Of a DNA stretch of 64,000 nucleotides, positions 14,370-45,221 are shown piece after piece. The notes beneath the pieces are model-generated. The model saw nothing but the letters and a program-made list of their open reading frames with translations, was not told the DNA's origin and ran no database searches. Within the stretch, counting starts at the first letter, position 1. Each line of letters opens with the position of its first letter. The translations under genes and the position numbers were made by a program. This DNA is from Girardia tigrina. Lineage: Eukaryota. The DNA is taken from assembly GCA_001938485.1 (NCBI GenBank), contig MQRK01247738.1, forward strand, positions 30,174-94,173. The letters are read 5' to 3'.

Positions 14370-14597
14370 TCAATATTTGCTGTAACTGTCATAACCGTAC
14401 GAATCATATTTGTCGTATTTTTCATATTTGTCGTATTTGTCGTACTTTCCGTATTTGTCGTGTTTTCCGTATTTGTCGTATTTTTCGTATTTGTCGTACT
14501 TTCCGTATTTGTCGTGTTTACCGTACTTGTCGTATTTGTCGTAGTAATCGTCTGCTACAACGAACGCGATGAGAACTGCAAGAATGAGTAACTTCAT
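14370..14597 (-). CDS. Secreted Tyr/Lys/Asp tripeptide-repeat peptide, copy 1 (75 aa)
   Basis: Signal-like MKLLILAVLIAFVVA, then 15 x [Y/H][D/E/G]K. Has a TATA box, CAAACATG start and AATAAA. The ORF is intact in all three paralogues, with synonymous differences. Confidence 0.9.
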   Translation of the reverse strand: MKLLILAVLIAFVVADDYYDKYDKYGKHDKYGKYDKYEKYDKYGKHDKYGKYDKYDKYEKYDKYDSYGYDSYSKY

Positions 14598-14950
14598 GTT
14601 TGAATGAAAGTATCAAATATGTAGTAATAAAATGTTGTGAAGAAACAGTGAAACAGACGGATATTTATACAATTCTGTCTACAGCGATGTTACAAAGTTT
14701 GAAAGATAAAACTTACCGCAGACCTTCATTATTCACCTTTAAGCCATGATAATTTGCAGTTTTTATCGTACGATTTGCTAAAGGTGAATTTCGAAAACAA
14801 AATCTTTACGTACAGATAGTAGAAATGTCGTCGTGTCATTTTCGATATGTTAAATGTACAAAATATTCTTGTTCGAATAATTTTAGACGTTTTTCTCTCT
14901 TTTTATTCTTTTGTAATTCGATACGCAAAAATTAAATTTCAATAGAAAAT
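14598..14950 (-). promoter_or_regulatory. Core promoter/upstream region of repeat-peptide gene
   Basis: TATAAATA at 14669-14662, about 70 nt before the ATG. Near-identical in all three copies. Confidence 0.7.
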
Positions 14951-15559
14951 CTAAAAGTACTGAAAATTTTCTAAACTAAATAATAATTTAATTTTAATGC
15001 ATTGATATTATTTTTATATTATTTAATTAGTTTTAAAGGATTTTATTTTAATTGATTTATGTTGCATTAAAATATATTTTTTTAATGGTAAAAAAGAAAC
15101 CTGTTTTTAATTTAACTGACAAAAAATGATTTTTCAAAAAAGATTAAAAGAAAATATAAACGATTATTAAATGAGGAAAATATATTTTTTTGTTGATTTA
15201 TTTAAAATAAATTATTTAAAATTTTGTATCTTGTAAATATGTTAAATGAAATTTCGAACTTTGATTAAAATTGAAAATATAAATAAATATATAAATTCTG
15301 TGAAATTGGGAATTTATTTCCGGAATGTCGTTATGCAAGAATTTATATATATATTTATATATAGAAAGATTTGTGTCAAATGGAAATAAATTTGAATTTT
15401 ATTGAAAAAGGATTTTACATATTTATAAGCAAAACAAAATGTTTATTCCTATTGTTTTATTATTCTGTCTAATATTTCTACTAAACAAAAATATAGCTTT
15501 AAGTAAATTTTATTTATATTCTTTAAAATCTATAAACATCATAAAAAAATAGGAATTCA

Positions 15560-16268
15560 TGTCTTTTTATACATTAAGAGAAACAAGGCTTCATCGCACA
15601 GACCGTAACAAGAAAGAAATAAAAATTTGTTGACAATGTAATCTCGAATCGTACAGCTTGAAGATGGTTTAAAAAGACCACCAACGACAATACTGATCTT
15701 GGACACTATTTGCCCACTAGGTCGCCCTTCGACAGTGAAGGAATTATAAAAAATCTTAGAAACAAATCACTAAATAAGCACTCATTGATTGTATTCGATT
15801 TCCTTATTGCTCAAACATCAATTGTGTAGCATCGTCATGGTTTTTGCCAAAAGCTTCCTTTTAAATTGAATTATATTTGAACTCAAAAACGAGTTAACCT
15901 TCCAAAAATTTCTGCATTATAGTTTTATCCGTAAAAGTTTTACACGTAACGAAATGTAGTCATATTTTTACAGTCCTCAATTTCGTCTAACTTGATCATA
16001 TACACAGCGTTTGGTAGAATCACCTCACGTTGATCGATCGAAAGCATGGTCATCTGCAGCAAGACAACGCAAAAATACACATCACCAGGCTAACACTAGA
16101 AAAGATATAATATCCAGAAGCCATCGAACTTCGGTATCTAATGTATGGTTTATCATAATAAAGTAGAATAATAGTAATAATAATAAATATAAAAATTATA
16201 TCCACGAGACCATAAGGAAAACCCGATTTAAACCGTGTATATTTTGAAATATTGTTCCTATAATTCAA
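15560..16268 (-). pseudogene. Degenerate coding fragment with two hydrophobic segments, family unknown
   Basis: ORF 16050-16268 has two TM-like stretches; coding-like but broken sequence continues downstream. Confidence 0.25.
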
Positions 16269-16659
16269 TTAATTATTTGTTATAAGTAAATATTAAGCAG
16301 ATTATCTATCAGTTAATTGTTGTTATTGAAGTTCAAATTTTCTAAGAAATTTATTTGTTGAAACTAAATTATGATGAACAATTCGCATATTCGGCGCCTC
16401 GATCTAAAGGGCTACGAAATCTGTCCCTTTAAAATAATTCCGAGAACTGGGGTATTTATAGCACAAGAATGAAGCTGCCGTGAAAAAAATGAACTTTATA
16501 AACTGATCCTCTATTAAGGCAAAATTGATGGTAAATAATATTGTTGAGAGTGGGTAAGATTATAAAGGTAAACTAACTGAATAATAATAATTCAGTGAAA
16601 TAACTTTTTTCAATAAATAGAATAAGAATAAGTTTAATTGCAATTAAAATGTATTAATA

Positions 16660-17281
16660 GAGGGTTGCCTCATAAGTTTTGCCTCAAAAAGACCACCAAG
16701 AAAACACAAAAATGCAATAAAATATAAAATATTTTATCAATCGTCCACGTCATGCAAATGCGAAAAGTAGTCGTCATTGTGCTCAATACATCTCAGCCTA
16801 CGCACATGGAGGCTGCGTTTCCCATTTTGGAAAAAAATCACGCGATTTCTTGTCAAACCAATGTAGAAGATCTGTGTTTATATCGTTGACGACGGCATAT
16901 TATTTTCCTCTAAGTGCACATTTCATCGTTTTCACGAAAATTGGAAATCCACCTTTCACATGTTCTCTTTGAGACTGTTCCAACTGTGTCAATCATCTGT
17001 GAGGGTTTTAAATCCCTCTTCCAGCAATAGTAAATTAATTTACGAATGTATAGGATGATGAAAATATCCGAAATTTACGAAAACCCTTTTATTTTATTAA
17101 AACAAAAATTCATTTAGAACAGAAAATAAAAATTATTGGACATAAATAGATCGCAAATGCTAGTTTATCTAATTCACATTTTATTAGGAATTGCAAATAT
17201 ATAAGAATTATTTATATGATGCAAGCATATCTGCTGTTAACATAGGTATATGTGTGCGACAAAACTTATGAGGCAACCCTG
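16660..17281 (-). mobile_element. Tc1/mariner deletion derivative
   Basis: TA-flanked TIRs (G/C)AGGGTTGCCTCATAAGTTTTG. Transposase C-terminal remnant 'RCIEHNDDYF' on the minus strand. Confidence 0.8.
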
Positions 17282-17570
17282 TACTAAGAATAACTAGAAA
17301 TAGAAAGAATAAAAAAGAATATTGATATTGTCATCACTATACAAATAAAAAGAAAAAAGACGGAGAAGATATTTGAATAAATTAATTACTTTAAATTGTT
17401 CGTTAATCGTGTAATAAATCGGATTTGAAGAAGATACTGGTTAGGATGTATATGGAACAGTCTTAGGTTGGGTAAAATTGGTAAATTATTAACAGATATT
17501 ATTAATAAACTTGAAAAAAGATGGCAATTTTTTATTAAAAACAAATAAACGCCATTTAAAAATATATTTT

Positions 17571-17614
17571 AGGATAATATATTTCGACGGTTTAACCGTC
17601 ATCATCAGATCACT
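17571..17614 (-). ncRNA. Minimal type I hammerhead ribozyme (PLE pLTR)
   Basis: CTGATGA-T-GACGG/TTAAA/CCGTC-GAAA-TATA-TT; stem I GAT/ATC. Confidence 0.8.
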
Positions 17615-19330
17615 GATTATGTTCTTTTTTTATTGCTTTTATATAAGAAGTGAATGATTATGCAATCACTTACGTAAGTCTAATCGAAAACTCTTAACAA
17701 ATTAGTTGAGAGTGCTGTTTGAACATTGATTTTAGGATCACATGATCTTATCAACAATGCTTCACATGANNNNNNNNNNNNNNNNNNNNNNNNNNNNNNN
17801 NNNNNNNNNNNNNNNNNNNNNNNNNNNNNNNNNNNNNNNNNNNNNNNNNNNNNNNNNNNNNNNNNNNNNNNNNNNNNNNNNNNNNNNNNNNNNNNNNNNN
17901 NNNNNNNNNNNNNNNNNNNNNNNNNNNNNNNNNNNNNNNNNNNNNNNNNNNNNNNTGTATTGATAAACAATGTCCGAACACAATCCTAAAGGAGTATGTG
18001 ATTTATTGCAAAACATATTCTCAACTTTAAATGATTGAGAAATAATTTTTAAATTTAAAATATTATTTGTTGATATCAAGATCGAATTCTTGGGGTGTTT
18101 AAAACCGTCGGAGTAAGGTAAGCTTAGAGTATACCCAGGTGTAAAGCAGGTTTCAATGTTTAAACTATTATTTTTTTCATTTTTGATTTTTTCTTTTTCG
18201 ATTATTTTATGTACAGTCTCACGAGTCTATGATGGACTTAGAGTAACCGTTATTATTCAATAACTTGCTCAATGTATCAATACTGTTAATAGATTTTGAA
18301 AATGTGGAAGAAAGAGACCAAGAGCGGTATAACAAACCTTTGATCATATTTCTTTTATATTTAAACTCACAAAAACTGTTTATGGAGGTGTACAAACCAG
18401 TATCAGTTTTCTTTCGATATATTTCAGTTTCATAATGATCATTTTTCCTTTCAATGATTAAATAACAATTTGTTAATTGAAAGGAAAAATGATCATTATG
18501 AAACTGAAATATATCGAAAGAAAACTGATACTGGTTTGTACACCTCCATAAACAGTTTTTGTGAGTTTAAATATAAAAGGAATATGANNNNNNNNNNNNN
18601 NNNNNNNNNNNNNNNNNNNNNNNNNNNNNNNNNNNNNNNNNNNNNNNNNNNNNNNNNNNNNNNNNNNNNNNNNNNNNNNNNNNNNNNNNNNNNNNNNNNN
18701 NNNNNNNNNNNNNNNNNNNNNNNNNNNNNNNNNNNNNNNNNNNNNNNNNNNNNNNNNNNNNNNNNNNNNNNNNNNNNNNNNNNNNNNNNNNNNNNNNNNN
18801 NNNNNNNNNNTCTAAGCTTACCTTACTCCGATGGTTTTAAACACCTCAAGAATTCGATCTTGAAATCAACAAATAATATTTTAAATTTAAAAATTATTTC
18901 TCAATCATTTAAAGTTGAGAATATGTTTTGCAATAAATCACATACTCCTGTATGTTTGTGTTCGGACATTGTTTATCAATACACATGTAATGGGTGCAAT
19001 GCCACATACATCGGAGAGACTGCCCGTCATCTCTGCAAACGAGTCCAAGAACACAGTCAAAAAGGGGGAAAGNNNNNNNNNNNNNNNNNNNNNNNNNNNN
19101 NNNNNNNNNNNNNNNNNNNNNNNNNNNNNNNNNNNNNNNNNNNNNNNNNNNNNNNNNNNNNNNNNNNNNNNNNNNNNNNNNNNNNNNNNNNNNNNNNNNN
19201 NNNNNNNNNNNNNNNNNNNNNNNNNNNNNNNNNNNNNNNNNNNNNNNNNNNNNNNNNNNNNNNNNNNNNNNNNNNNNNNNNNNNNNNNNNTTCATTTCTT
19301 ATATAAAAGCAATAAAAAAAGAACATAATC

Positions 19331-19374
19331 AGTGATCTGATGATGACGGTTAAACCGTCGAAATATATTATCCT
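19331..19374 (+). ncRNA. Minimal type I hammerhead ribozyme (PLE pLTR)
   Basis: Same core as 17571-17614: CTGATGA at 19337, GAAA at 19360. Confidence 0.85.
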
Positions 19375-20369
19375 AAAATATATTTTTAAATGGCGTTTAT
19401 TTGTTTTTAGATATTATTAAACAAGAGAAATTTCAACGACAACATATGTCGAATTATTTTGTCGAGGAAAAGTTAGATATATATATCCTTAAATTGGTTA
19501 AATGGAATTGTAGAAATGTAGACTAGTTGAAATGTGAATGTCAATGATAATTAGTTGGATGATTTGAAATCGATAGTAAATGTCCAAAGAATAGATTAGA
19601 TTGTCCCAACAAATAACTTCATATTTCTTTTCATTTACTTCGTAGTAACATTAATCTAATCCACGATAATCTGAATAATTCTTTTAAAATGTTTTAATCG
19701 ATACTTTAATTAATATTAATATAAACATATAATACTTATAAATACATAAATATATAAATAAATAATATAAAAAGACAAGATGATTATGTTAATGTCGGAA
19801 GGAAAGTGGCTACAGAGGAAACTCATCGCGTGTAAAAAGTGCCTGCAGATGTCTACTTGCTTGAATACTTAGCAAAGGTTTGTACTTAGAAGAATTATAT
19901 GCTTTGAATGACATCTTTAAATTGTACAACATTGTCTTTCCAACAATGGACTTTTCAAAAGAAATGTTAATGGCTACTTTTATTTTAAATATTTAGAAAC
20001 ATACCTCAAATATAACAATGAAAGAAGTTTTCATGGCATTTTACTTTTTATAATCATTTTATATAGGGACATTTCCATTGTTTTTTCAACACATTAGCTT
20101 TTCGCAAACTTTATTAACGAGAATTGTTTTCCTGAAATGACCTTTTACTTAACAAATTTAACTTTTGCAGAATTTCATTAATTTTGCATTATGAAGAGAA
20201 TTCATTGAAACATTTTTGAATGATGTTTGAATAATGTTTGAGGTATTTGTAAAGGCCTTTTGCGATAGGTGTACCTTACTAATTTTGCACTCTGGAGAAA
20301 AATGAAAAACACATTCGAATAGCTGTAGTATATTAAAAATTTCTTAAAACATTTTTAAAAAAATCAACG

Positions 20370-20410
20370 TTGGACATGTTTCGTTCAAAGTCTTTCATCA
20401 TCTTCAGTAA
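20370..20410 (-). ncRNA. Degenerate hammerhead-like motif
   Basis: CTGAAGA...GAAA-CATG-TC core, but stems I and II are mismatched. Confidence 0.4.
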
Positions 20411-21419
20411 CTTTATTTATGCTGATTTTATTTTTATTTTTATTTTTATTATTTTTTTATTATAAGAATTTATTTAATTTTTATAATATAAAAAAGAAAC
20501 TATTTTGAAAAATAAATAGTACTAAAGTTCAACTTTATTGGTTAATATTTTATTTTTTTATTTAAACATATTATTATATTATAATATATTATTATTATAT
20601 ATATTATATATTTGATTAATGGCTACCATTTAAAAACTAAGCGTAGTAGTAGTAGAGTAGTAAGCGAAGGACAACATATTTTAAATTGGAAAATAGAAAA
20701 CGACCTTTTCATGGTCATTTTTATGATTGTCAGACGAGAAGATTATTTCAGGTTAAGAGTCGAAATACTCGGCGAGTGGATGAGCAGGGAATTGCTGGCT
20801 TCAATATTTTCCTCTCGATAGCAAAAAGAAATGCAGTTGCGCAAAAGAATTTTACAACACTAACTGAAAATATGTCAAAACTGGTACGGATATTTAGTTT
20901 CATATATATGATGGATAATTTTAAAATTTTACAAATTTACCTGAATGAAAATTTAAAAATTCAAAGAATTACGTTATAATCAGTGAGAATATCATATCAG
21001 AAGAGCGAAGAAAAACTCAAAGTATTTCTTTTCAACCACGGAAAACTTTACTTATTAACTGTTTTAAGTTAGATAACATTTAAGAACGCAGTTCACATGT
21101 GAAAAGAAGTATCCTTGAATCCAGTCCAACATATTTCGTAGCAGAACTAGGTTAAATATTAAACGTTGAAGCTTGATAAATGACTTCAAAAATTGATATC
21201 CCAAACTTCGGCATTTTTCTTTTTTGTAGTATTTATTATTTAAAACTTCACTTTTTCTTTCATAAAATGTATAAATAAATTAAATAAAAAAACAAGAAAA
21301 CCAATATTACGGAGGTGACGATTTGTCTTTGATGAGCTGTATGAAGTAAGATTGTTGTTGTTTCGATTAGTTGGTTTAGATTATTTTCGTTTCTGTATTT
21401 CTTATGTCCTAAAATACTT

Positions 21420-21731
21420 TAAGAAAATACCCATGCGACCGGTTTTGGCAATGATTGGTAGTGTAAAGTATAATGTAGCTACGACACGTGTTAAATTACC
21501 ATTGCTTAGTAATCCTCTTGAATGTAAAAAGAAGATTTCATATTTTTAATGTTTTTAAATATCTTATGCTGTACTTTAAAATATAAATTATACTCGAATA
21601 ATTATTTATCGTGAACATCTAAAATATCAATTTTCCATCTGGGTGGGAGAAACACATTTCCAAATACTAAACTCAACATACAAAATTCAACAAACCAATT
21701 TCAACATACCAAATTTAAAATATTCCTCACA
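21420..21731. mobile_element. Penelope RT fragment (+) abutting partial Gypsy LTR (-)
   Basis: 'IPMRPVLAMIGSVKYNVA...NPLECK', then LTR family 2 sequence ending TATTCCTCACA. Confidence 0.65.
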
Positions 21732-21767
21732 ATTATAATAATAATAATAGTAATGATAATAATAATA

Positions 21768-21798
<31 letters not shown>

Positions 21799-21959
21799 GG
21801 TGATGATGATTTAAACTTCTTAACAATTTAATTCTTATCAGATGAAGATTTATTTTTATTTTTTTATTTTAGAATATAATTATTTTAAAATAAAAATTAT
21901 TTAAAAATAAAATCATTGTTTCTTAATTTTGAATTACTTAAAGATAGGATTTAAAGAAT

Positions 21960-22800: not shown

Positions 22801-22842
22801 AAACAAATTCTGGCAGATCACAATTCCAAAACTTTGTTTACT

Positions 22843-23010
22843 AATTTGAAGAATGTTCTGAATTGTTTGTTGTTTTATATTTTGCATGTTGTATGTTGAT
22901 TCGGATTGTGTCTCTGTTACCAAGATGGCTGATTAATATTTTCTTTGATTCCTACTAATTGAAAATAAGTAAATTTAATTTTAAAGTTAAAATATTTAAA
23001 ATATTTAAAA
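22843..23010 (+). mobile_element. Partial Gypsy LTR (family 1)
   Basis: Matches the reverse complement of about 700-864. Confidence 0.7.
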
Positions 23011-23337: not shown

Positions 23338-23680
23338 AAATAATATTATTAATAAAAAAAATTTTTTTATAAAAACAACCACGTTTTTCAAGCATTACCA
23401 ATGCACTAAAAAGAGGAAAATAATTTTTTTCTAGACATGTGAGAAATTTTATACCTAACCAAAAACAGCGGATTTCTGAATTACTGCTATTAGTAACTGC
23501 TATTTCCTCTTTACTGCTTTTTAGTAACAATCGATCATTTCTATGCCCCACGTTTTTGGTTAGGTATAAAATTTCTCACATGTCTAGAAAAAAATTATTT
23601 TCCTCTTTTTAGTGCATTAATAATGCTTGAAAAACGTGGTTGTTTTTATAAAAAAATTTTTTTTATTAATAATATTATTT
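23338..23680. repeat. Long inverted repeat (foldback/MITE-like)
   Basis: 129-bp arms at 23338-23466 and 23552-23680, 2 mismatches, 85-bp spacer. Confidence 0.9.
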
Positions 23681-23699
23681 AACTATTTTTAGTTATCAT

Positions 23700-25010: not shown

Positions 25011-25027
25011 TCTTTACTTATGTAAAA

Positions 25028-26987: not shown

Positions 26988-28090
26988 ATTACTAATTTTA
27001 TTGTGATCCTTAAACTTGATTTGTTCTATATTTTGGTTCATATTGTTGAATAATTACAAATGTAATTTTATTCGTAGTAAACATTTTTATATTATTCTTA
27101 TAAGAACATAACTGAACTGATCAATGATCAGTGATCATTTACATTTATATTGATCCTTTAAATTGCTTCTTTTTAATATGTAAAAGAAAGGATCTCACCG
27201 AATAATTCAATTAGTTCTGTATTTGGTTTCTAATACAAATAAGCTATTTCCAATTTATAACTAAAACCCATCACGTAATTTAATCTTATATTTAATAAAA
27301 CATCTAATAAAATAAAATAACAATAACTTAAATAAAATTTATTTTAGCATTTGTTGAGATTTTTACTAATTTTTTATATTGTTATTGCACCATGATTTCG
27401 ATGTCTTCATTATCATAAAACTTCGTTTATCCGAACGTATATAATCGTTTATCTGAAAGAACTTCTTCAAAAAGTATGTGGACATTCGAGAGTCAACTTT
27501 GTATTTTTATTCCATCAATAAGCATGTATGATGTGCCAAAGGAAGTACAATATTTTATATTTTGTCATCAGGAAAAGGATTATTGTACAAAAAGTTTGTC
27601 CTTAAAATGTACCTTCAAACATGCTTAAGGGTCGATATTCCTGTTTGTCGTGATTTAGAAATATAATAATCAATCTTCGTTTTACTCTCATTCGTTTATT
27701 ATGGAATTTAAATCTTTTATTATTATTATTATTATTTTAAACCAATTAATATTGCACGCTTATTCTTGTAACCTCATTTCGTATTTTGATTTACATTATA
27801 AGTCAAAAATTAATTTTGATAAACTTTTTTTGAACTAATTTAAATAAATATTAAAAAATTTTCTTTGACAATTTCTTTTATATTTTCTTTTTTATAGGTT
27901 GAATCAAAAAATATTTTTATGCAATTTTTAATGAGTAAATTGATTCATTTAATATCGAATTTTTGACTTGTTTTATTCATTTTTAAACTATAAATATATC
28001 AAAACAACAAATAGACAACAACGGAATTTATTTTTCTGATATTTGATACTCATAACATAATAAATAAATAAATAAATAAATTATTTGATC

Positions 28091-28318
28091 TCAATATTTG
28101 CTGTAACTGTCGTAACCGTACGAATCATATTTGTCGTATTTTTCATATTTGTCGTATTTGTCGTACTTTCCGTATTTGTCGTGTTTTCCGTATTTGTCGT
28201 ATTTGTCGTATTTGTCGTACTTTCCGTATTTGTCGTGTTTGCCGTACTTGTCGTATTTGTCGTAGTAATCGTCTGCTACAACGAACGCGATGAGAACTGC
28301 AAGAATGAGTAACTTCAT
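28091..28318 (-). CDS. Secreted Tyr/Lys/Asp tripeptide-repeat peptide, copy 2 (75 aa)
   Basis: Identical to copy 1 except one E to D and two synonymous changes. Confidence 0.9.
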   Translation of the reverse strand: MKLLILAVLIAFVVADDYYDKYDKYGKHDKYGKYDKYDKYDKYGKHDKYGKYDKYDKYEKYDKYDSYGYDSYSKY

Positions 28319-28803
28319 GTTTGAATGAAAGTATCAAATATGTAGTAATAAAATGTTGTGAAGAAACAGTGAAACAGACGGATATTTATACAATTCTGTC
28401 TACAGCGATGTTACAAAGTTTGAAAGATAAAACTTACCGCAGACCTTCATTATTCACCTTTAAGCCATGATAATTTGCAGTTTTCATCGTACGATTTGCT
28501 AAAGGTGAATTTCGAAAACAAAATCTTTACGTACAGATAGTAGAAATGTCGTCGTGTCATTTTCGATATGTTAAATGTACAAAATATTCTTGTTCGAATA
28601 ATTTTAGACGTTTTTCTCTCTTTATTCTTTTGTGATTCGATACGCAAAAATTAAATTTCAATAGAAAATCTAAAAGTAATGAAAATTTTCTAAACTAAAT
28701 AATAATTTAATTTTAATGCATTGATATTATTTTTATATTATTTAATTAGTTTTAAAGTATTTTATTTTAATTAATTTATGTTGCATTAAAATATATTTTA
28801 TGG

Positions 28804-28845
28804 TCGCAATATATTTCGGTGGATGTTCCACCATCTTCAGGCTGA
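28804..28845 (-). ncRNA. Minimal hammerhead ribozyme (PLE family B)
   Basis: CTGAAGA-T-GGTGGA/ACA/TCCACC-GAAA-TATA-TT. Confidence 0.8.
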
Positions 28846-31491
28846 ATAAACAACAAATTCGCTGTCTTATATATAGCAAATTGATGATTATGCAAACATC
28901 TTGCGTAATAACTAATTAAATATTTTCAACAAATTGGAAGAGACTTGTTTGGACATTAATGGACGGATTGAGTGATTTAATCAATAATGCTTCACAAGTA
29001 ACTCTTTCCCAATAATTTTTAAAATTACTGCACAATATTTTAAAACTAGTTGTTTTCACCTCCGATTTACAACCCTTCATATGTCCAGCAATACTACTCC
29101 CATTACCCAATCGTCCATGCTCCTGAATCCGTTTACAGAAATGACGAGATATCTCTCCAATGTATGTAGCGTTGCACCCATTACACGAAAATTGATAAAC
29201 CAGATTGGAGCATAAACTCAAAGGAGTACGAGATTTATTGTTCAACATACTTTTTTTATTAATTAATTTATATATCGTCTCATAGTTAGTTTCTTTAAAA
29301 ATGATTTCGAATATCCATTTTTCTGCAATAGTTATGTTAGTTTATCTATGCTTGTATATGCATTTTCGTATGTTGATTATAGAGACCAACACCTAAATAA
29401 CAAACCTTTTATCATACTTCTATTATACTTAGGTTCACAGAAGCTTTTAGTAGTAGTATATTGCCCTGTATCTGTTTTCTTTCTATAAATCTCTGTCTCG
29501 TAACGACTCCCTTTTCTCTCAATTAACAAATCTAAAAATAGTAAAACACCATTCTTCTCAAGCTCAACCGTGAAAACAATATTAGAATGAATGGAATTCA
29601 TATAAGATAAAATCGGCAACCTTTTCGTATGTTGATGATAGAGACCAACACCTAAATAACAAACCTTTTATCATTTAATATTATACTTCTATTATACTTA
29701 GGTTCAATTTAAAAAGGTTCTATTTTAAAAAACCTGTCAAAAAAAATTAATGTTTGTAAATTTGATAAAGGTATTGGCTTAGGTTTTTTGGATAAATCTG
29801 ATTATCTTAATAAGCTTCATGAAGTGTTAGAAGGTCCACAATTCAAAAAATTAGATAATTTTCGAAAAAATAGGAAACTTCTACCATTGAAAGATGATGA
29901 ATTTCTACGTTCTCTTTTGACTAAACTTTGTAAAAACGGTCACATGGATAAGAAATTAGAAAAACTTTTATGTCCTACTGGTTCCCAACCTGCTACACTT
30001 TATGGTCTTCCTAAGGTACATAAGGATAGAATTCAAATGAGACCTGTTTTATCCATGAATAAAACATCTCAATACTATATTGCAAAATTTTTGGTTTCGA
30101 AATTAAAACGTTTGATTTCCTCTGAGTTCCAGTGTAAAGATAGCTTTCAATTTGTTGAATTTATTTCTAACTTTGATTTTGGTAATGAAAATGAATTCAT
30201 GGTTTCTTTTGACATTGCAAGTCTTTTTACCAATGTCCCATTGATGGAAACAATTGATCTATTTTGTGATCTCTGGAAATGTAATAGTGGTGAACATGAT
30301 AGTCTTGATGAGTTTGCTTTTCGTGAATTACTTACATTTGAAACATCAAATGTTCATTTTTTGTTTAATGATAATTGGTATAAATAGGTAGATGGTGTTG
30401 CAATGGGTTCCCCTTTAGCAACAACAGTTGCATCCAGTTTTCTATCTAACATTGAAAATAAAATTCATTTGTTCACGGGTGTTAGACCTTTAGCTTATAA
30501 ACGATATAATAATGATATTTTTCTCGTCTTTAAAGAGCGTGAAAATATGTTGCCGATTTTATCTTATATGAATATCATTCATTCTAATATTGTTTTCACG
30601 GTTGAGCTTGAGAAGAATGGTGTTTTACTATTTTTAGATTTGTTAATTGAGAGAAAAGGGAGTCGTTACGAGACAGAGATTTATAGAAAGAAAACAGATA
30701 CAGGGCCATATACTACTATTATAAGCTTCTGTGAACCTAAGTATAATAGAATTATGATAAAAAGTTTGTTATTTAGGTGTTGGTCTCTATCATAAACATA
30801 CGAAAATGCATATACAAGCATAGATAAACTAACAGAGCTATTGCAGAAAAATGGATATTCGAAATCATTTTTAAAGAAACTAACTAATGAGACGATAGAT
30901 AAATTAATGAATAAAGAACATGAGGATAAAGGTGAATTAAATCTAATGAAAATTCTAATATTGGATATACGCTAATCGTTCCTTATTCAGAAGGTTACAA
31001 AAATTGAAATCATCTATTTTAAAATCAATCGATAGTAAAAATTTGAATTTAAAAATCATTTCTAAATCTTACAAAATGCAAAGTATGTTCAGCAATAAAT
31101 CTTATACTCCTTTGAGTTTATGTTCCAATCTGGTTTATCAATTTTCGTGTAATGGGTGCAACGCTACATACATTGGAGTGACGTCTCGTCATTTCTGTAA
31201 ACGGATTCAGGAGCATGGACGATTGGGTAATGGGAGTAATATTGCTGGACATATGAAGGGTTGTAAATCGGAGGTGAAAACAACTAGTTTTAAAATATTG
31301 TGCAGTAATTTTAAAAATTATTGGGAAAGAGTTACTTGTGAAGCATTATTGATTAAATCACTTAATCCGTCTATTATTGTCCAAACAAGTCTCTCTTCCA
31401 ATTTGTTGAAAATATTTAATTAGTTATTACGCAAGATGTTTACATAATCATCAATTTGCTATATATATAAGACAGCGAATTTGTTGTTAAT

Positions 31492-31533
31492 TCAGCCTGA
31501 AGATGGTGGAAAATCCACCGAAATATATTGCGA
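31492..31533 (+). ncRNA. Minimal hammerhead ribozyme (PLE family B)
   Basis: CTGAAGA-T-GGTGGA/AAA/TCCACC-GAAA-TATA-TT; bulged stem I TC(A)GC/GCGA. Confidence 0.8.
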
Positions 31534-31914
31534 CAATAAAATTTGAGTTTAATGGCGTTCTGGATTGTAAAATTTTGCCATTATTTTTTAAATTTCTTAT
31601 TAAAATTTATTTATTAATATTAAAACAAAAACCTGTTTTTAATTTAACTGATAGAAAATGATTTTTCAAGAAAGATTAAAAGGAAAACATAAACGATTAT
31701 TAAATGAAGAAAATATATTTTTTCTGTTAATTTATTTGAAACAATTTATTTAAATTTTGTATCATGTAAATATGTTAAATGAAAGTTCGAACTTTGATTT
31801 AAAATTGAAAATATAAATAAATATATAAATTCCGTGAAATTTGGAATTTATTTCCGGAATGTCGTTATACAAGAATATATATATATATATATAAATTGTT
31901 TGTGAAAGATTACT

Positions 31915-32455: not shown

Positions 32456-32485
<30 letters not shown>

Positions 32486-35435: not shown

Positions 35436-35467
35436 GTTATATTAAACAATTTGCTGATGAACTTTTT

Positions 35468-36271
35468 CATTTTTGATTTTTTCTTTTTCGATTATTTTAT
35501 CTACAGTCTCACGAGTGAGTCTGTCTATGATGGACTTAGAGTAACCGTTATTATTCAATAACTTGCTCAATGTATCAATAATAACGGTTACTCTAAGTCC
35601 ATCATAGAGAGACTCACTCGTGAGACTGTAGATAAAATAATCGAAAAAGAAAAAGTCAAAAATGAAAAAATTAATAGTTTAAACATTGAAAACTGCTTTA
35701 CACCCGGGTATACTCTAAGCTTACCTTACTCCGAGGGTTTTAAACACCTCAAGAATTCGATCTTGAAATCAACANNNNNNNNNNNNNNNNNNNNNNNNNN
35801 NNNNNNNNNNNNNNNNNNNNNNNNNNNNNNNNNNNNNNNNNNNNNNNNNCTCCTTTAGGATTGTGTTCGGACATTGTTTATCAATACACATGTAATGGGT
35901 GCAATGCCACGTACATCGGAGAGACTGCCCGTCATCTCTGCAAACGAGTCCAAGAACACAGTCAAAAAAGGGGGAAAGAGTAATATTGCTGAGCATAAAA
36001 AAACATGTAAATGTAATATGAGCATAAATGATTTTAAGATTTTGTGCAAGCATTTTAAAAATTATTGGGAGAGAGTGTCATGNNNNNNNNNNNNNNNNNN
36101 NNNNNNNNNNNNNNNNNNNNNNNNNNNNNNNNNNNNNNNNNNNNNNNNNNNNAATTTGTTAAGAGTTTTCGATTAGACTTACGTAAGTGATTGCATAATC
36201 ATTCATTTTCTTATATAAAAGCAATAAAAAAAGAACATAATCAGTGATCTGATGATGACGGTTAAACCGTC
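35468..36271 (+). mobile_element. Penelope family A 3' fragment with short inverted 5' segment; hammerhead truncated
   Basis: Near-identical to the family A arms at 17506-19408. Inverted arm 35468-35580. Ends at ...AACCGTC, before the GAAA box. Confidence 0.85.
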
Positions 36272-37950
36272 AGAATTTAGAATTATCAAAATCAGAAATT
36301 GATGTTTTAAAGTTTGGATTTAATCACGGTATTAAAACTAGAGTAAATGAATGGAAAATTAAATGTAAAGTTGAGAGTCTCTTTAATCATATTAGTAATG
36401 ACGATATTATTTATAATGAAAATTTAAAAACTGATTTAAGACGTGCAACAGATAAATATATTTCAAAAAATAAAAAATTAAAATTAAATGATGAAAAATT
36501 ACTTTTAAAATTAAAAAAGCATGAAATTTGCATTTCAAAATTCGATAAAGGAAATGGTGTATTTATTCAAAACAAGTCTGATTATTTGAATAAAATGTAT
36601 TCTATATTGAATACGAATAAATTTAGTGTTATTGATAAAACATATTAATTTAATGATAAACAATTTTATAAAAAGTAATGATTTAAATTCTACTCTTAAA
36701 AACAGTTTACTAGCTCAAGGGTCACAACCTTCTAAGTTATACGGTCTTCCAAAAGTACACAAAACAGACATCCCGATGACTCCTGTGTTGTCAATAATTG
36801 GAAGTGCACAATATAATGTTACTAAGACTCTTGTTAAATTATTAAAACCATTAATAAATAATCCTTTAGAATGTAAGGATAGTTTTGCATTCATTGAAAA
36901 GATTATAAAAAGAAGGAAGATGTGAATAGTATTTTAAACTTTATAAACAATTTACATCCAAACATTAATTTTCCTTGTGAAAGTGAAAGTAATAATAAAA
37001 TATCATTTTTGGATGTCTTGATTGAAAATAAGCAAAATAGATTCATGACAGGGGTCTACAGAAAACCAACGGACACTGGTCTTTACAGTACTCCGAGTAG
37101 TTTCTGTGACCCAAAATATAATAGAAATATGATTAAGGGTCTAGTACATAGAGTTTGGAGGATAACTTCTTCTTTTGAAATTTTTGATAAAGAATTTGAT
37201 ACTCTTCATAATAGACTTAGTATTAATGGTTATAATAAGAAATATTTAAATAACATCATTAAAAATACTGTGAAGTCAATTTATTTAAAATCAAAAGACA
37301 AAATTAATAAAAATTTGAATGCAACTGAGGAAGTGATTAATTCGAAAAAAATTTATTTAAAAATTCCGTATTCCGAAGGTGCTAGGGATTTTAAACGAAT
37401 TTTAGAAAAACAGGCCCCAGTAGGTGTTACAATTAAAGTATTGTTTCTAACTAATAAAATTTCTAATTATTTCTCAAATAAATCTAAAACACAATTGGGC
37501 ATGAAAGCAAATTTAGTTTACCAATATAAATGTCACAAGTGTGAATCCTTGTACATTGGAGAGACAAATCGTCACCTCCGTAATAGAATTGCAGAACATA
37601 CCCAATCAAGTAGAAAAAGCTCAATTTTGGACCACATAGTAAAATGTCATGGAACTCAAAGGAAGGTATTTGATAATTATTTTCGGGTTTTGATTAGTAA
37701 CTTTGATCACAATTATGAAAGGACAATTACTGAAGCACTCTTGATAAAGTTTTGTAAACCTAGTGTAAATGTGCAAAGGGATTCGTTCAATCATATTAGA
37801 GTATTTTGACGTAACACACTGTGACGTAATGGTCATCTTTCTATATAAACAATAAGTTTCTAATTAAATACAGAATTGAAGATGCCACAAGAGTGGCGAA
37901 ACATGTTTTCCAATAAAAATTTAAAATTAAAATGGTGTTATTTTTGTTTA
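36272..37950 (+). mobile_element. Penelope-like element family C, RT core deleted
   Basis: N-terminal 'NLELSKSEIDVLKFGFNH' and LYGLPKVHK, then a jump from 'KDSFAFIEKI' to the thumb. Intact thumb + GIY-YIG ORF 36922-37809 (LVYQYKCHKCESLYIGETNR). Confidence 0.9.
37873..37910 (+). ncRNA. Variant minimal hammerhead (U at core position 3)
   Basis: GAA-TTGAAGA-T-GCCAC/AAGA/GTGGC-GAAA-CATG-TT-TTC. Confidence 0.7.
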
Positions 37951-38020
37951 TATATATATATATATATATANNNNNNNNNNNNNNNNNNNNNNNNNNNNNN
38001 NNNNNNNNNNNNNNNNNNNN

Positions 38021-38081
<61 letters not shown>

Positions 38082-38279
38082 GTTTAGGTGAGTTAATAAA
38101 CTAATATATCCAGAGCGTTTACTACCTCGGTTTACAGTATTTACCCCCTCTTTTATTAGCTTTCATAAATTATGAATAATATTCCTACATTCATATAAAA
38201 AATAACTAAGTATAAATTTTTATTTCAAAATCAATGTACAAAGAAAAACGTTTTCATTTGTCTCATCATCCTCATCAAT

Positions 38280-39814
38280 GGCGAGACAATCAAATTCACT
38301 GATGTCTTCAGTAATTGATGTCATATATCAAGGAGTGATTATATCGAATGAAAATAATGTCATCCACAACTTCTTTCGACATGATCTCTCTCAAAGAGAA
38401 TTAATATTTTTGTGGACACTAAAACACCTCTCCACAGCTGCCTCGGAAACTGGCATCATTTTGAGTTTATGTTCTATAAATAGACGCAATCGTCCTGGAA
38501 TGATTGCAATTGAATGAAATTCCTGTTCACAAACGTATTGATGGAATTTAGGAACTCCTAGAGCGTCCAACCACTTGGGAAGCCTAACTTCAGAAGCTTC
38601 AGATAACTGCTTTTGCTCATTCACAAACATATCAAGGTGGACAACTGGATTCATTAGTCAATGTCTGCAATTTTCAACCACCATTGCCAAGTTGTCCGAC
38701 TGGATTCAGAAGTCTTTACAACTGCTTTGTAGAACTCTTTTGTAGAACTCTGTTGGATCTTTGAATCTTTGATATATTTTCCAAAACTGACTGCTTTTTA
38801 AAATAATTGCCAAATTAGATTATTTAAACAACTCTAATTTAATTTTATTAATTACATTTAATTAAATTTAACTTCTATTAAATTTAATTAAATTTCATCG
38901 AACTATTTAAAAGTTATATTATAAATTCGGCTATTACTTTTGGGAGAGACAACCTACTTTACAACATACGAAACATCATATCAAACATTCCTCTCAGAGA
39001 CAAAGCTGCTATTGTGTTCACCATGTGAACAAGCATATCAGAATTGGATGGTCCTTGTGTCTGGAGGTATTTCGCCAGATCCATAAAACGATCAAATATA
39101 CTGCTCCATGTGATCTCACAATAGCGATTTATAATACCATTCTGAATGTGGCTCGAGAGTATTTGAAAAGCAAATCTAATGAATTCAACATTTTTCAATG
39201 TATCTTTAATTATAAGGTTGATTATGTAAGCAGCACATCTTAGTAGCAATATGGTTGGGCGTTGTTGAAATACGAGCTTTATTGTGGCAACTATATATCT
39301 GGCATTTTCGGTAATAGCACTGATCAGATTGATATCAAAAGAATCCAAATTGTCCAGTAGATCAAATACACACATTGAAATAGATAGTGCACTATTGTTA
39401 GGTAACAAGAAACTCTGCAAAAATACTGCTTTCGAGGGTTCATTCGAGAATAATAATAAGATGGTTTAATTTTAGTGATTGGGTACATAATTTAGTCATT
39501 ATTTATTATTTTAGTCATAGTTATAAGAGAAATTAAAAAAAACTAAAACCATTAATTTATTAACTTAATTTAAACTGAATTTAAAATTAAATTAATATTT
39601 CATATTTTATATGGAAAGTTAATAATTATTTTAATTTTTTAAAATTAATTTTTTTTAATAACACGGTATTCATTTTTTTAGTATAAAAAATTATGTGTAT
39701 GACCAAACCATATTAGAAAAGGAAAGAGCTAATTTATATTTGAGAACCCGTAATGCGGGTCTGGAGGCAAAGTACGGGCTCCGGGCTTGGGCTAAGGGCC
39801 ATGCATCACCCCTA
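38280..39814 (-). mobile_element. hAT transposase pseudogene
   Basis: 'ITENARYI...RCAAYIINLIIKD' (TDNA / CxAH motifs) and dimerisation motif 'PVSEAAVERCFS'. TAGGGGTGATGCA end at 39814. Confidence 0.8.
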
Positions 39815-40512
39815 GATATCGATAATGTGGGAGATGTTTCAAACTAATTTAACATTTGTCCAATTGAAAATTATTGTTATTCTAAATATTAAAATTTTAA
39901 ATATTAAATAAAAAATATACTTTATGTGTAAAATTTCTGTTTCCTGATGCATTAAAAACATTTAGTAAAGCAGTTCACGCGTAAAAAGAAGTATGCTTGA
40001 ATCCAAACATATTTCCTTAGACGAAAAAAATTAAATAATAAACGTTGAAGCTTGATAACTGGCTTCAAAATTTGATATCCAAAACTTCGAAGTTCCCCTA
40101 TTTTGTTGCATTTATTATTAAAAAATTCACTTTTTTCATAAAATGTATAAATAAAATATTATTTATTATAATTTGCTGTTATATGTAATTATTAAATAAT
40201 TATATCCTTATTAATTACTTAAATCAATCTAAACTTATATCTAAAATATGTGGCTTGCTTTTACGGCTATTAAATTTGAGTTTGAATTTGTAGTAAATGA
40301 ACTGCAGCGTCCACCAAGGGCTTTCATGTTTTGTTTTCATAAGAACTTTAGGGAAAAGATGAATTGAAAGAAAGAATATACCAAAGTAAAATTGTTTCAT
40401 CCTCCATAGAGAAAACGTTCCCTTGGGAAAAGAGAAAATCTTTCAGTCTTTATCTGTCTAAAATATTCCTGAAAGAAAATTTACGTTTCAAAAATTTAAT
40501 TAAAATATTAAA

Positions 40513-40620
40513 ATGGAATATAGAAAAGGAGAACTAAACAACAACATTGATATGCTATCGAGACAGAATTGCGACACGAGCTTTCAGTGTCACATGGAAC
40601 ACGAAGAAGCTAAAAATGGT
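40513..40620 (+). mobile_element. Gypsy pol fragment
   Basis: 'EYRKGE...DMLSRQNCDTSFQCHMEH' is homologous to the pol at 49027-49701. Confidence 0.7.
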
Positions 40621-40926
40621 AACTCATTCTGTTCTTATTGGGATACATTACTTTCATCTAAATTTAAAGTATTTTTCATAATTTGTTTCATTAAGAAAAC
40701 CTGATTCAAAATAAATCAACAAAACTTTTTCTAATTTCCATAATCAAACTAAAAACAAGTAATTTTAATAAATTGATTCTTTATTTGCAATTGTATCAAA
40801 TATAAATTATTAAGTCTTAGGTCTTGCTTTTTAAATTTATAAGTTTTTATGTAAAGGTGCCTTCAATAAAGGATTTTTAAAATATTTTTATGTGTTTGCA
40901 AATTTTGATGAATATGAATTTCAATT

Positions 40927-41040
40927 AGGAATGTATCGGTTTTCGGCTCCGGCTCCGGAAAACCGGCTATCCGGTCATTTTTGAAACTCCGGTACCGGCT
41001 TCCGCTCCGACAAAATTCTACCGGTTTTGATGCCGGTTTT
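40927..41040 (+). mobile_element. hAT-like terminus with CCGG subterminal repeats
   Basis: TAGGAATGTA start followed by clustered CCGG motifs in AT-rich context. Confidence 0.4.
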
Positions 41041-41643
41041 TTTGCTCAATGTTGATAAGAATTAAAAACTCATAAATAAAGCGCTTATAAAAAACAAATG
41101 ATGTTAAATGATGATCTCGAAAACGATGCGTTTACAAATGCAGTTATACAGATTTTATTATGAAAGCAATATCTTACGGTAATTTTGATGCCATTTAGAA
41201 TTGATTTTCTGTTATTAAATGAATTATTTTCCATAAAAGTAAATCGTTTTATACAATTATTTCACAATTATATTAATCTCTTATTACATTAATTAAATTT
41301 TAAAAAAGTTTAAATTGTATAAATGTTATGCCAAATTCGGCAACAGTTTTGCTGAAATAGTGTAATTGCCGAATTCATAAACTGGTCAATTTTTGCCGTA
41401 TTCAATAACTATATGAAAAATTCTCAATTATAATATGAAAAAATCTCCAATTAGAATGAAAAATTATCTATTTCATATGAGGAAAATATGAAAAAAAATT
41501 AATATGAAAAATTATGAAATTAATTTTAAAAATATTTTTTTTCATATTAAATTGATAATATTTCATATTAAAATTGATATTTTTTCATATCAAATGCAGA
41601 ATGAAGTATTATATAGGAACAAAATAAATTTACTTTTTAGATT

Positions 41644-43292
41644 AGTGGGATAATTGAATGTTATTTTAATATTCAATTATTGTTGTTGTTTTAATATTTG
41701 ATTATTTGTGTTAGAATTTAAATATATTTATTCTTGATGGATTTCGATTGTGTTCTTACTGGCGACCACAGCCACTAAAATCTCGAAACCAAACCGGTAA
41801 TTTGCGCAGTGAGCAGAGCGGAAGAGATAAGAAAATTGTTTTCAAAATTACAACTTGCTGCTCAAGAAGCACTGGCACTGAAGGTATCATTTTTTGATGG
41901 TAAATCGGATAACACAGGGAAATGACTGGACGAAACAAATGAGTTTGTGTTATTCAACCAAATGGAAATGTCATTTGCCTTCGACATGCTTTTACGAGGG
42001 GACTGTCCTCTGTTATGGAACGAATTTAGTGCAAATCGGAAAGATTTGTCGAACGAAGAAGTGTCCAGATGGTTTCTATCAACATTTACCAAACTGAGGA
42101 GTGTCGTGGACAAAGTCAAGGAACTGAGCAACGTTTCTCAATGACACGAAGAACGATATCAATGTTTCGAGTTACGGGTAAGATCATTAGTTACCGAAAT
42201 TTTTAAGACGCCAGAAGCAATGGATGAAATTATACATACATAATGATAAGCTACGAGAAGCATTTATTTTAGAATCGGATATGCCGTCAGAAAAGCGTTT
42301 TACAATGGCAAGTATGCTGGAGCAATTGACTCCTAAATCAGTCGCAGCAGTTTTACCAAATAGGATGAGAAATTCTGATTCTGTTAGAAAACCAAACATG
42401 GATATTGCACATTTTTTTACCTTCTAAAACAGGAAAGAAATATGTACTTGTGAAGGTTGTTAGATTTAGCAAGGTCGTTGCATTGGTACCACTTCGTAAT
42501 CAAGATGAAAACACGTTGATTTCTGCTATTAAAAATAGATGGATTTATCGATTCGGGTAACCCAGATCCTTTTTATCAGACAAGAGAAAAACTTTTGATG
42601 GTAACAAGTTGCGGGAGATGTGTAAAACCTTCAATATATCTCAAGAATTTTCGTCTCCGTACCAACACCAATCCAATGGATTAGCAGAGCACACGATTCG
42701 TTCATTGTGTCATATGGTAGTTACTTCTAGTGCATCTCAAAATGATTCTCTAGATTGGGAAGAACTACTTCCAAAAATTGAATTTCTTCTGAATACAACA
42801 TGGCAAAGCTCTATCGCATGTACTCCATTTGAGGTTTTATTTAGACAGAAGCTGAATTTACATGGCACATTTAATAGATTATCCCATACACAATCAAATC
42901 CGATGACAGTTGAACAAAATTCTAAGTCTTCCTATCGATTACAGATGCAAGATGATGAAAAACGAGGACATCGGATCTTTCAGGTGGGAGAGGAAGTGTT
43001 AGTAAAGGTGGAACCTCACAAATTGAAGAAAAAAGGATTCAGATATGAAGGGCCATATAAAACTGTAAAATTCCTCACTCCTCATCAAGTGGTTCTGAAG
43101 TATCCCAGGTCCTTGAAACCGCACTGCATTGAATGGTTGAAAAGGTATACAAGACCTTCAAATTAAAGAGGAGGAAGTTGGATAATTGAATGTTATTTTG
43201 ATATTCAATTATTGTTGTTGTTTTAATATTTGATTATTGGTGTTAGAATTTAAATATATTTATTCTTTATGGATTTCGATTGTGTTCTTACT
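41644..43292 (+). mobile_element. Internally deleted Gypsy-like LTR retrotransposon with 117-bp AGT...ACT LTRs
   Basis: LTRs 41644-41760 and 43176-43292. PBS TGGCGACCAC overlaps the last LTR base; PPT AAAGAGGAGGA; imperfect TSD AGATT/ATATT. Gag remnant plus integrase core (SSPYQHQSNGLAE); no RT. Confidence 0.9.
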
Positions 43293-45011
43293 ATATTTAA
43301 TAATTTTGCATTGCTTAAATGCATAAATTTTTTAACTTTTGACGAACATTAAATTTTTTTCATAATGGAAACTCGACGAATTAGGACGTTTCTTTGTCAA
43401 CGGTAAGTCACTTCCTGCAAACAAAATTTAACAAACAAATTGAAATTTTCAATTAACATTCGTGTACATCCTTTTTATGAACGAGTCTTCAATTTGTGTT
43501 ACTTAAACTAAACTTTTCATAATGGAATTTTGGAATATTTTGGAAAAATATTTAAATTTTATGGATGTTTTCATTTTTTTAACATTATAATGTCTAACTA
43601 TCATACATAATATAATAAAAAAAACCAATATATATATATATATATATANNNNNNNNNNNNNNNNNNNNNNNNNNNNNNNNNNNNNNNNNNNNNNNNNNTA
43701 TATATTTATGAAAAATATTTTGAGAAAAAATAAAATGTTTTTAATATTTTTACTCAGTAAGTTTAGTAATAGTAAGTTGGAATTTCTAAATTAAGGATTA
43801 ATTAATATTTATATATTTTTCAATATTAATACTTAATTCTGATCTATTTAAATCCATTTTAATACATAATAAAAACATTATGTAAAATATATCTAAACTT
43901 GTATATGAGACCACTCCAAATAATTTAAAGTTCGTTCTAAGTATAAAATAACTAAAATAATTTTAGCAGTTATTTTACATTAAAGAGTAAAAGCATCAAA
44001 ACATTTAAGTTATTAAAAAATTAAAGATAAAATCACATTTAAAACGTTTAAATGTTTAAAAAATTTGTTGATATAATAATAAAATATTTTGGTAAAATTT
44101 TACTAAAATATTTTCTAGCACAATATAAAATAATAACAAAACATAAGTATTTTATACAAATAATATTAATTCAAATAAAGATTATGTAGGATTAATAGAA
44201 ATGGATGAAGTTCGCAACAATGTTTTACCTTTTATGTTTCCATTCTCTCAACAAAGATATTTTTGTATTTTTATATATTATTGGATGTATAATTAATAGA
44301 ATAATAATGTGTTCTTAGTATAAAATTATTTATATTATTTATTTTCTTTACAATAAGTGTGATAAACAAAAGTTGGTCACGCAGAAATCGACAAAATATG
44401 AGTTTTTTAACATATAATATTTTTATTATGGTAAGAAAAAGTTCATAAAAATTATAAAAAAAATATATACTCAAACAATTATTGAGTCTAAAGTTTACAA
44501 ATAAATTCATCTTAAATAACACATTTCATTTTCTATCATTTCAATAAAATCAAAAAAAATAATATAAATTGTTAGAACAAAATTGATGAAGTAAATCAAA
44601 TTATATTATATAAAATTGAATAAATTTAAAACGTTTATTCCAAATAAATCACATGTAGTTCAAAATGAGTTGGAAAATCATTCAAATTAGAATTATTTAT
44701 TTATATATTGTTATATATTTCTATATCAATAATTTTCTGAAGAACATTTTAAAAATAATATTAAAAATTTTTGCTGTGGTGATTTTAACAAATGCAAAAG
44801 ATTTTTCTAATACATTCTTTTTGTTTTTCTTCATATAAAAATAAATAAAACAACTTTTATTTTTTAAATTGTACATATAATAACGAATTATTTGGTTTGT
44901 TTTTATTATTCTTTAAACGATAAATATATCAAAAACAAAAAGACAAAAGTTGAAATTCATTTTTATATTTGATACTCATAACAAATAAATAAATAAATAC
45001 ATTATTTATTC

Positions 45012-45221
45012 TCAATATTTGCTGTAACTGTCGTATCCGTACGAATCATATTTGTCGTATTTGTCGTATTTGTCGTATTTCTCATGTTTTCCGTATTTGT
45101 CGTATTTTTCGTATTTGTCGTACTTTCCGTATTTGTCGTGTTTACCGTACTTGTCGTATTTGTCGTAGTAATCGTCTGCTACAACGAACGCGATGAGAAC
45201 TGCAAGAATGAGTAACTTCAT
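45012..45221 (-). CDS. Secreted Tyr/Lys/Asp tripeptide-repeat peptide, copy 3 (69 aa)
   Basis: Same signal peptide and C-tail as copies 1 and 2; 13 tripeptide units (in-frame 18-bp shorter). Confidence 0.9.
   Translation of the reverse strand: MKLLILAVLIAFVVADDYYDKYDKYGKHDKYGKYDKYEKYDKYGKHEKYDKYDKYDKYDSYGYDSYSKY

Follow-up and report, generated by a model that had tools for sequence, protein, structure and literature searches.

The eggshell protein p48 of Schistosoma mansoni is about 400 aa long, is built on a five-residue GYDKY-type repeat and is rich in Lys, Asp and Gly. The mussel proteins mfp-3 and mfp-5 are small, secreted, unfolded and rich in Tyr and Lys, and serve as strongly basic interfacial glues. 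Tyr makes up 26% of p48 (PMC3499410), and trematode shells are formed through bonds from DOPA-quinone to Lys (PMC2758302). The egg capsule of planarians is quinone-tanned. Its DOPA-rich proteins are believed to be a product of the yolk cells, and knockdown of tyrosinase by RNAi stops tanning of the capsule; pigmentation of the capsule requires four reported genes, tyrosinase and three others, while the way in which other yolk products act was called unclear (PMC5544531). The major yolk proteins of Schmidtea mediterranea are ferritins (bioRxiv 10.1101/2022.12.19.520916). In a polyclad flatworm, the footprint yielded no DOPA (PMC9229212).

A further S. mediterranea gene, MX1, has been published as a probe (PMC9286257, S1 Table) under the name 'Monosiga brevicollis MX1 hypothetical protein', with ESTs DN298207.1 and DN300757.1 (PMC9286257, PMC5544531). 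It marks mature yolk cells and is absent from hatchlings; it is activated last in the yolk lineage, in large yolk-filled cells; ophis RNAi abolishes its expression and klf4l RNAi lowers it (PMC9286257). MX1 is among the yolk-gland genes that fall most after CPEB1 RNAi, and is absent from the four pigmentation genes of the same paper, whose main text does not state an MX1 knockdown (PMC5544531). The literature searched assigns no function to MX1 and uses it only as a cell marker.

An ORF scan of the 64-kb stretch of Girardia tigrina DNA analysed here (the window) yielded three intact single-exon ORFs on the minus strand, each running from ATG to TGA (Table 1). Along the window their start codons are 13,721 and 16,903 bases apart, as in the preliminary description (about 13.7 and 16.9 kb), the order and spacing of the copies depending on scaffolding over seven gaps, that at 43649-43698 included. 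No N occurs inside any of the three genes, the closest gaps being at 1,236, 7,457 and 1,314 bases, and the reading frames are therefore unaffected by assembly gaps. Long antisense frames over the genes lack an ATG start, and were rejected as a by-product of the repeat. The core observation of the preliminary description, three intact, co-oriented genes for secreted-type repeat peptides, is thus confirmed.

Table 1. Positions of the peptide genes and associated features in the window
Feature	Position	Strand	Remarks
Copy 1 CDS	14370..14597	-	75 aa: 15-aa signal-like peptide and 60-aa Tyr/Lys/Asp peptide, 15 strict three-residue units
Copy 1 signal-like peptide	14553-14597	-	15 aa, judged by hydropathy
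Copy 2 CDS	28091..28318	-	75 aa; differs from copy 1 at 3 bases, of which one gives Glu38 -> Asp
Copy 3 CDS	45012..45221	-	69 aa; two units fewer than copies 1 and 2
TATA box (TATAAA)	14664..14669	-	72 nt upstream of copy 1 ATG
Copy 1 3' UTR	14291..14369	-	79 nt; AATAAA begins 59 nt past stop
Duplicated unit around copy 1	13253..15362		About 2.1 kb; self-BLAST
Penelope-type (GIY-YIG) retroelement	28800..31598		Inserted about 480 bases upstream of copy 2 start codon
Ctr copper transporter, C-terminal coding stretch	54956..55234	-	PF04145, 35.8 bits (cut-off 25.3)

The mature peptides of the window copies are 54-60 residues long. That of copy 1 contains 19 Tyr, 16 Lys, 13 Asp and 2 Glu, 5 Gly, 3 Ser and 2 His, with 14 of the 19 Tyr directly after a Lys and a charge of +0.9 at pH 7; the composition, near-zero charge and predominance of Lys-Tyr steps that had been claimed are all borne out, as is the 15-aa signal-like peptide, for which the mean hydropathy of residues 3-14 is 3.6. 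The strict three-residue period, also claimed, extends over 13-15 [Y/H][D/E/G]K units and is broken in the first three and last twelve mature residues. TRF called the core of the three-residue units as a 9-base repeat, and runs of 13 units are expected at about 3e-35 genome-wide, which excludes a chance origin. In these peptides Tyr accounts for 30-35% and Lys for 22-27% of residues, and Cys is absent. The features expected of a quinone-tanned eggshell precursor, namely a signal-like peptide, high Tyr with Lys or His partners and no Cys, are all present.

Like p48, and p14 and p19 with it, the peptides are Tyr-rich, and the likeness would extend to vitelline origin and DOPA-quinone to Lys tanning. 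They differ from p48 in length (51-81 aa vs about 400 aa), in their three-residue rather than five-residue unit and in Gly content (7-10% vs 15%). GYDKY does not occur in the window peptides and occurs once in the long-class peptide described below; with 1 mismatch allowed, a scan of the whole genome for sequence coding GYDKY in tandem gave no pair. Nor was p48 recognisable among the database matches, from searches that covered similar lengths only or gave no names. The sole Pfam model that responded to the window peptides was the TES domain (PF08034; E 0.3-0.5), membership of which was rejected at 11.0 and 11.8 bits, the gathering threshold being 24. In the TES family, to which Fasciola vitelline protein B belongs, Tyr stands at about 6% and a Gly-spaced motif is conserved, unlike in these peptides, and a search of the genome, run with no positive control, gave no TES match. 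In comparison with mfp-3 and mfp-5, the charge is here balanced by Asp and the counterpart is made in yolk cells; homology is not implied.

Searches of protein databases returned composition-only matches, and those inspected were short similar runs in unrelated proteins without conserved ends. Nothing significant was found in the PDB and no usable match in the ESM Atlas, and AlphaFold2 gave no usable model (pLDDT 55, pTM 0.12). Full-text searches of the literature for the motif produced noise only, and the supplements of PMC6467871 and PMC5293490 contained no match.

The MX1 probe was translated and aligned with the window peptides by eye, and in this low-complexity sequence identity amounts to 6 of 7 residues at the signal-peptide end and 14 of 15 at the C-terminus, including 11 of 12 in the C-terminal block. 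Between these ends MX1 has 14 three-residue units (aromatic, acidic or Gly, Lys), one of them beginning with Gln. Its mature length of 57 aa, two Tyr close to the mature start and short 3' UTR are further likenesses. It differs in beginning with Thr-Glu where the window peptides begin with Asp-Asp, in its 4 His and one Gln unit, and in a Tyr content of about 26% vs 32% here. Judged from the matching non-repetitive ends, the window genes are counterparts of MX1. The Monosiga name is probably a spurious, composition-only database match, similar runs being seen in unrelated proteins. The genes had been presented as undescribed, which no longer holds, the counterpart being a published yolk-cell marker; what is new is a proposed function for a marker bearing a misleading name.

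The three genes had also been described as a cluster, and there are indeed three in the window; genome-wide the loci number nine, in three classes, the flanks of those outside the window being examined to 1.5 kb. The long class consists of three identical loci, which suggests assembly redundancy. Among the six short-class genes, every change at either end of the gene is silent, and there is a bias towards C-ending codons (P = 7e-16). Copies 2 and 3 carry the TATA box at the position that it has in copy 1, and the diverged paralogues retain it. RNA contigs span 14291-14599 of copy 1, and in run X1 a loose end of 23 T marks a non-templated poly(A) joined at 14291, where the genome has no T run. 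The copy 2-type base for Asp, at the position matching 14484, is present in runs X1 and X5. Three RNA runs that share their species label with a run holding the sequences contained next to none of the sequence words. The peptide genes are intact, selected and polyadenylated, and encode a signal-like peptide.

Because the site of MX1 expression is the mature yolk cell and the composition resembles that of tanning substrates, we infer that these MX1 counterparts probably encode a structural precursor of the capsule (cocoon) shell that is cross-linked by tyrosinase. Such an eggshell-type function would resemble that of schistosome p48. A peptide of 7-8 kDa would be produced in bulk, from several copies with biased codons, kept in shell globules and released into the genital atrium. 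Tyrosinase would convert Tyr to DOPA and then to quinone, which would bond to Lys or His of adjacent chains, and this cross-linking would harden and darken the shell. More speculatively, a predicted charge of about +4.5 at pH 5 that drops to about +1 at pH 7 may prevent the peptide from clumping in acidic granules and allow it to coalesce upon release. That MX1-family peptides are the main structural polymer of the triclad capsule, a minimal charge-balanced repeat that coalesces as pH rises and is then quinone-tanned, with an origin either shared with p48, as its miniature relative, or independent, is a tentative idea that we consider rather doubtful.

The preliminary description had named an eggshell among the uses of a Tyr/Lys tanning substrate, and that option agrees with the flatworm host and with MX1 in mature yolk cells; its glue, silk, cuticle and ice-binding readings find no support in this expression site.

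Several observations were counted against a shell role. MX1 lies outside the four reported pigmentation genes, and it comes on last in the yolk lineage (in triclad vitellocytes, shell globules form early). The expression site is known from another genus, and orthology is a by-eye match of low-complexity sequence, albeit one in which the non-repetitive ends agree.

The late appearance of MX1 in large yolk-filled cells, its absence from the reported tanning genes and the ferritin nature of the major S. mediterranea yolk proteins would also suit a yolk component that is not cross-linked, either a soluble reserve from which the embryo would draw Tyr, Lys and Asp or a metal-binding protein paired with the yolk ferritins. 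We consider this unlikely, since a four-residue alphabet makes a poor food store, both peptide ends are conserved position by position between paralogues and between genera, and the composition agrees with known tanning substrates. Tyr beside Lys is the mussel-adhesive pattern, and a small, secreted, charge-balanced peptide of yolk cells with this adjacency might instead be an accessory secretion of the capsule rather than its bulk polymer: a stalk or attachment adhesive, a droplet emulsifier or scaffold, or an antimicrobial coat. The stalk and cement of the planarian capsule come from separate glands, however, a near-zero net charge argues against a cationic antimicrobial, and the polyclad footprint lacked detectable DOPA (PMC9229212), making this reading more improbable still.

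Tissue placement comes from S. mediterranea rather than G. tigrina, where the product could be a mucus, rhabdite or adhesive gland secretion of the soma, which the glue reading of the preliminary description would require; the counterpart labels the vitellaria in S. mediterranea and is missing from hatchlings, and we regard a somatic source as very improbable, the three RNA runs nearly devoid of the words fitting conditional expression and proving nothing. A 9-base satellite or assembly duplication staying open by chance, as the TRF call, the 99% likeness of copies 1 and 2 and the identical long-class loci might suggest, is largely refuted and has a negligible chance of being correct, given the signal peptide, the TATA box, the polyadenylated transcript, the codon bias, divergence limited to silent changes, the counterpart in another genus, and the better fit of copies 1 and 2 to local duplication.

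If the genes do encode a capsule-shell precursor, they would offer a free-living counterpart for comparison with trematode eggshell proteins and a short, readily synthesised model of Tyr-Lys cross-linking. No Tyr-rich structural substrate of the planarian capsule is named in the literature searched, and the MX1 family is a direct candidate. Were the peptides the main polymer, they would be a tanning precursor far simpler than those known, in an animal amenable to RNAi.

Self-BLAST matched the duplicated unit of copy 1 to two segments around copy 2, 27147-28799 and 31599-31896, which the Penelope-type insertion separates, and its part 14201-15308 to 44851-45919 around copy 3. The 5' flank of copy 3 is 98% alike to those of copies 1 and 2, the 3' flank only 79.5%. 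As the likeness of copies 1 and 2 is confined to about 2 kb and is interrupted by the insertion, local duplication fits better than stacked haplotypes. Tyrosinase genes occur elsewhere in the G. tigrina genome and were found on none of the contigs bearing peptide genes; an enzyme-substrate cluster is thus absent. The Ctr stretch lies 9.7 kb upstream of copy 3 on the strand of the peptide genes, and any link between them is putative. The cox1 copies read ATA as Ile, AGA as Ser, AAA as Asn and TGA as Trp, the flatworm mitochondrial code 9.

The three open reading frames (ORFs) of the preliminary description are present in the window exactly as stated, intact and all in the same orientation. The residue counts given for the mature peptide of copy 1 are correct on recount, 14 of its 19 Tyr directly follow Lys, and its net charge, described as near zero, was computed as +0.9 at pH 7. 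The strict three-residue period applies to 13–15 units and does not extend to the initial three or the final twelve residues of the mature peptide. A run of 13 such units has a chance expectation of approximately 3e-35 genome-wide, and is not expected as a chance product. No N occurs inside any of the three genes, and the nearest gaps are more than 1.2 kb away; the order and spacing of the copies rest on scaffolding across seven gaps left as N. Gaps of 50 bases lie at 13085-13134 and 43649-43698, the second between copies 2 and 3. The 112 bases flanking the first are identical on both sides (12973-13084 and 13135-13246), as is typical of a scaffold join.

Location of the peptide genes, their longer paralogues and neighbouring elements
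Feature	Position	Strand	Basis
Copy 1 ORF	window 14370-14597	minus	ORF reading of window
Copy 2 ORF	window 28091-28318	minus	ORF reading of window
Copy 3 ORF	window 45012-45221	minus	ORF reading of window
Penelope-type element, inverted arms	window 28800-31598
Ctr copper transporter, last (C-terminal) coding stretch	window 54956-55234	minus	PF04145 above cut-off
96-aa class, L007/L008/L009	G000:C41904, C110923, C128268

These are real, working genes, expressed and under selection. Lack of transcription was one of the refuting conditions of the preliminary description, but a polyadenylated transcript was found: a contig from RNA run X1 spans 14291-14454 with no mismatches and ends in 23 non-templated poly(A) bases, 79 bases past the stop of copy 1 and 15 past AATAAA. 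Short repeat matches aside, RNA contig coverage is restricted to the transcript, and the contigs include one base characteristic of copy 2. TATAAA lies 72 bases upstream of the ATG in each of the three copies, and is kept at 43 and 54 bases upstream in paralogues with otherwise diverged upstream DNA. Compared with copy 1, paralogues L003, L006 and L004 show five, five and seven silent changes respectively within their first 19 codons, and each of the other five short-class genes shows 1–5 within the last 12; there are no replacements in either region. Of the Tyr and Asp codons, 87 have C and 23 have T in the third position, the reverse of the other ORFs of this AT-rich window (27 and 81 respectively; P = 7e-16), as expected for a highly expressed gene. 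Repeats 85-99% similar were found at great contig depth in run X6, from another organism; since contig depth cannot rank expression, these are taken only as presence in a relative. Run X5, a fish-gut metatranscriptome, contains coding sequence matching 14436-14596 (99-100% identity, high contig depth); the simplest source would be a fish that had eaten a sexually mature planarian, or contamination.

Protein database searches with the peptides, as proposed earlier, returned matches by composition only. The sole Pfam response was to TES (PF08034), at a score under the cut-off, and membership of that family was rejected. A counterpart was found in the published MX1 probe of Schmidtea mediterranea (DN298207.1, DN300757.1; S1 Table of PMC9286257), which was translated and compared by eye, with no computed alignment. 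Six of seven residues at the end of the signal peptide and 14 of 15 at the C-terminus are identical, the 57-residue mature peptide contains 14 units of the same three-residue pattern, and after the C-terminus come a stop codon and a short UTR with poly(A). Because the non-repetitive ends match, the window genes are judged from sequence to be homologous to MX1, beyond shared composition. By the same comparison they are new members of a family already in use as a yolk-cell marker (PMC9286257, PMC5544531), and at gene level they are not undescribed, contrary to the earlier suggestion. MX1 marks the last, mature yolk-cell stage in S. mediterranea, is absent from hatchlings, is reduced by klf4l RNAi and is lost with ophis RNAi (PMC9286257). 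The original report placed it with the yolk-gland transcripts that fell furthest on CPEB1 RNAi and described the protein as uncharacterised and conserved in Monosiga brevicollis (PMC5544531). Since runs similar to the peptide repeat occur in unrelated proteins, the Monosiga label is probably a low-complexity match. A second yolk-gland gene, Contig5529, was named after a Plasmodium match (PMC5544531, section 2.2), and may be another low-complexity shell protein.

The peptide is probably a structural precursor of the planarian egg-capsule shell. The value of the work lies in this proposal, which is cheap to test and bears on which proteins build the capsule. Quinone tanning hardens and darkens planarian capsules, DOPA-rich proteins are believed to be secreted by yolk cells, and tyrosinase RNAi gives pale, infertile capsules (PMC5544531). 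Oxidation of Tyr-rich precursors in trematodes yields DOPA-quinones, which bond to Lys of neighbouring chains (PMC2758302); an iron-catechol alternative to quinone bonding has been discussed (PMC11727788). A tanning substrate would be a fitting role because the counterpart is expressed in yolk cells (observed in S. mediterranea), the composition is rich in Tyr (30-35%) and Lys (22-27%) with some His and no Cys, and tyrosinase genes were found in the genome. The peptide would be stored in shell globules and secreted by yolk cells, its Tyr then being oxidised to DOPA and cross-linked into the shell. Its computed charge drops from roughly +4.5 at pH 5 to roughly +1 at pH 7, which prompts the speculation that it acts as a pH switch. 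The polyproline II geometry suggested earlier is likewise speculative, and an AlphaFold2 model was uninformative.

Two points count against a shell precursor. In triclad vitellocytes the shell globules arise early, and MX1 is switched on late. Four genes are reported to be necessary for capsule colour, and MX1 is not among them (PMC5544531). On account of these two points, some weight is left to a yolk storage or metal-binding component, which we consider unlikely, and to an accessory capsule component, which seems quite improbable. A somatic glue, to which the glue reading of the preliminary description would amount, is very improbable, fitting poorly with the yolk-cell expression of MX1 and with the absence of DOPA from a polyclad footprint (PMC9229212). 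As a shell precursor, the peptide would work like p48 of Schistosoma mansoni, which has 26% Tyr (PMC3499410). The window peptides are, however, far shorter, their repeat unit is three residues, and tandem GYDKY was found neither in them nor by a genome-wide pattern search. Common descent with p48 is possible, as is an independent origin.

Protein and pattern searches of the whole assembly (1.43 Gb, 255,254 contigs) were concordant and located nine peptide loci on seven contigs: five of window type (66-75 aa), L004 with diverged flanks, and three of a 96-aa class, in which a Tyr-Gly block stands at each end, with a His cluster and a pI of 5.9. The last three are identical to one another over 3.2 kb and may represent assembly redundancy, to which the tyrosinase matches, likewise in identical triplets, also point. 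The assembly yielded 31 cox1 matches, including many decayed nuclear copies of the mitochondrial gene; the nuclear copies decode with ATA=Ile, AGA=Ser, AAA=Asn and TGA=Trp, the flatworm mitochondrial code, and their sequence has a triclad appearance.

The window copies lie within a duplicated unit of approximately 2 kb. The Penelope-type element is inserted about 480 bases upstream of copy 2, and the DNA in between, TATA box included, is intact. The Ctr stretch is on the same strand as copy 3 and 9.7 kb upstream of it; its upstream exons were not found within the window. Tyrosinases need copper, and Ctr matches number only seven genome-wide. Among the nine peptide loci and these seven matches, no other locus shares a contig with Ctr, and the proximity, spotted post hoc, carries no weight as a link to the peptide genes. 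A Lys-rich frame of 139 codons (50830-51246, plus strand) runs into a gap and has no Pfam matches. Between the copies and on either side of them, the identifiable remnants of coding sequence derive from transposons (GIY-YIG, LTR reverse transcriptase and integrase, mariner-like, DUF659). Self-inverted, fold-back stretches occur at 8326-8811, 18344-18587, 23338-23680, 35457-35675 and 62782-63805, most of them adjoining GIY-YIG-like remnants.
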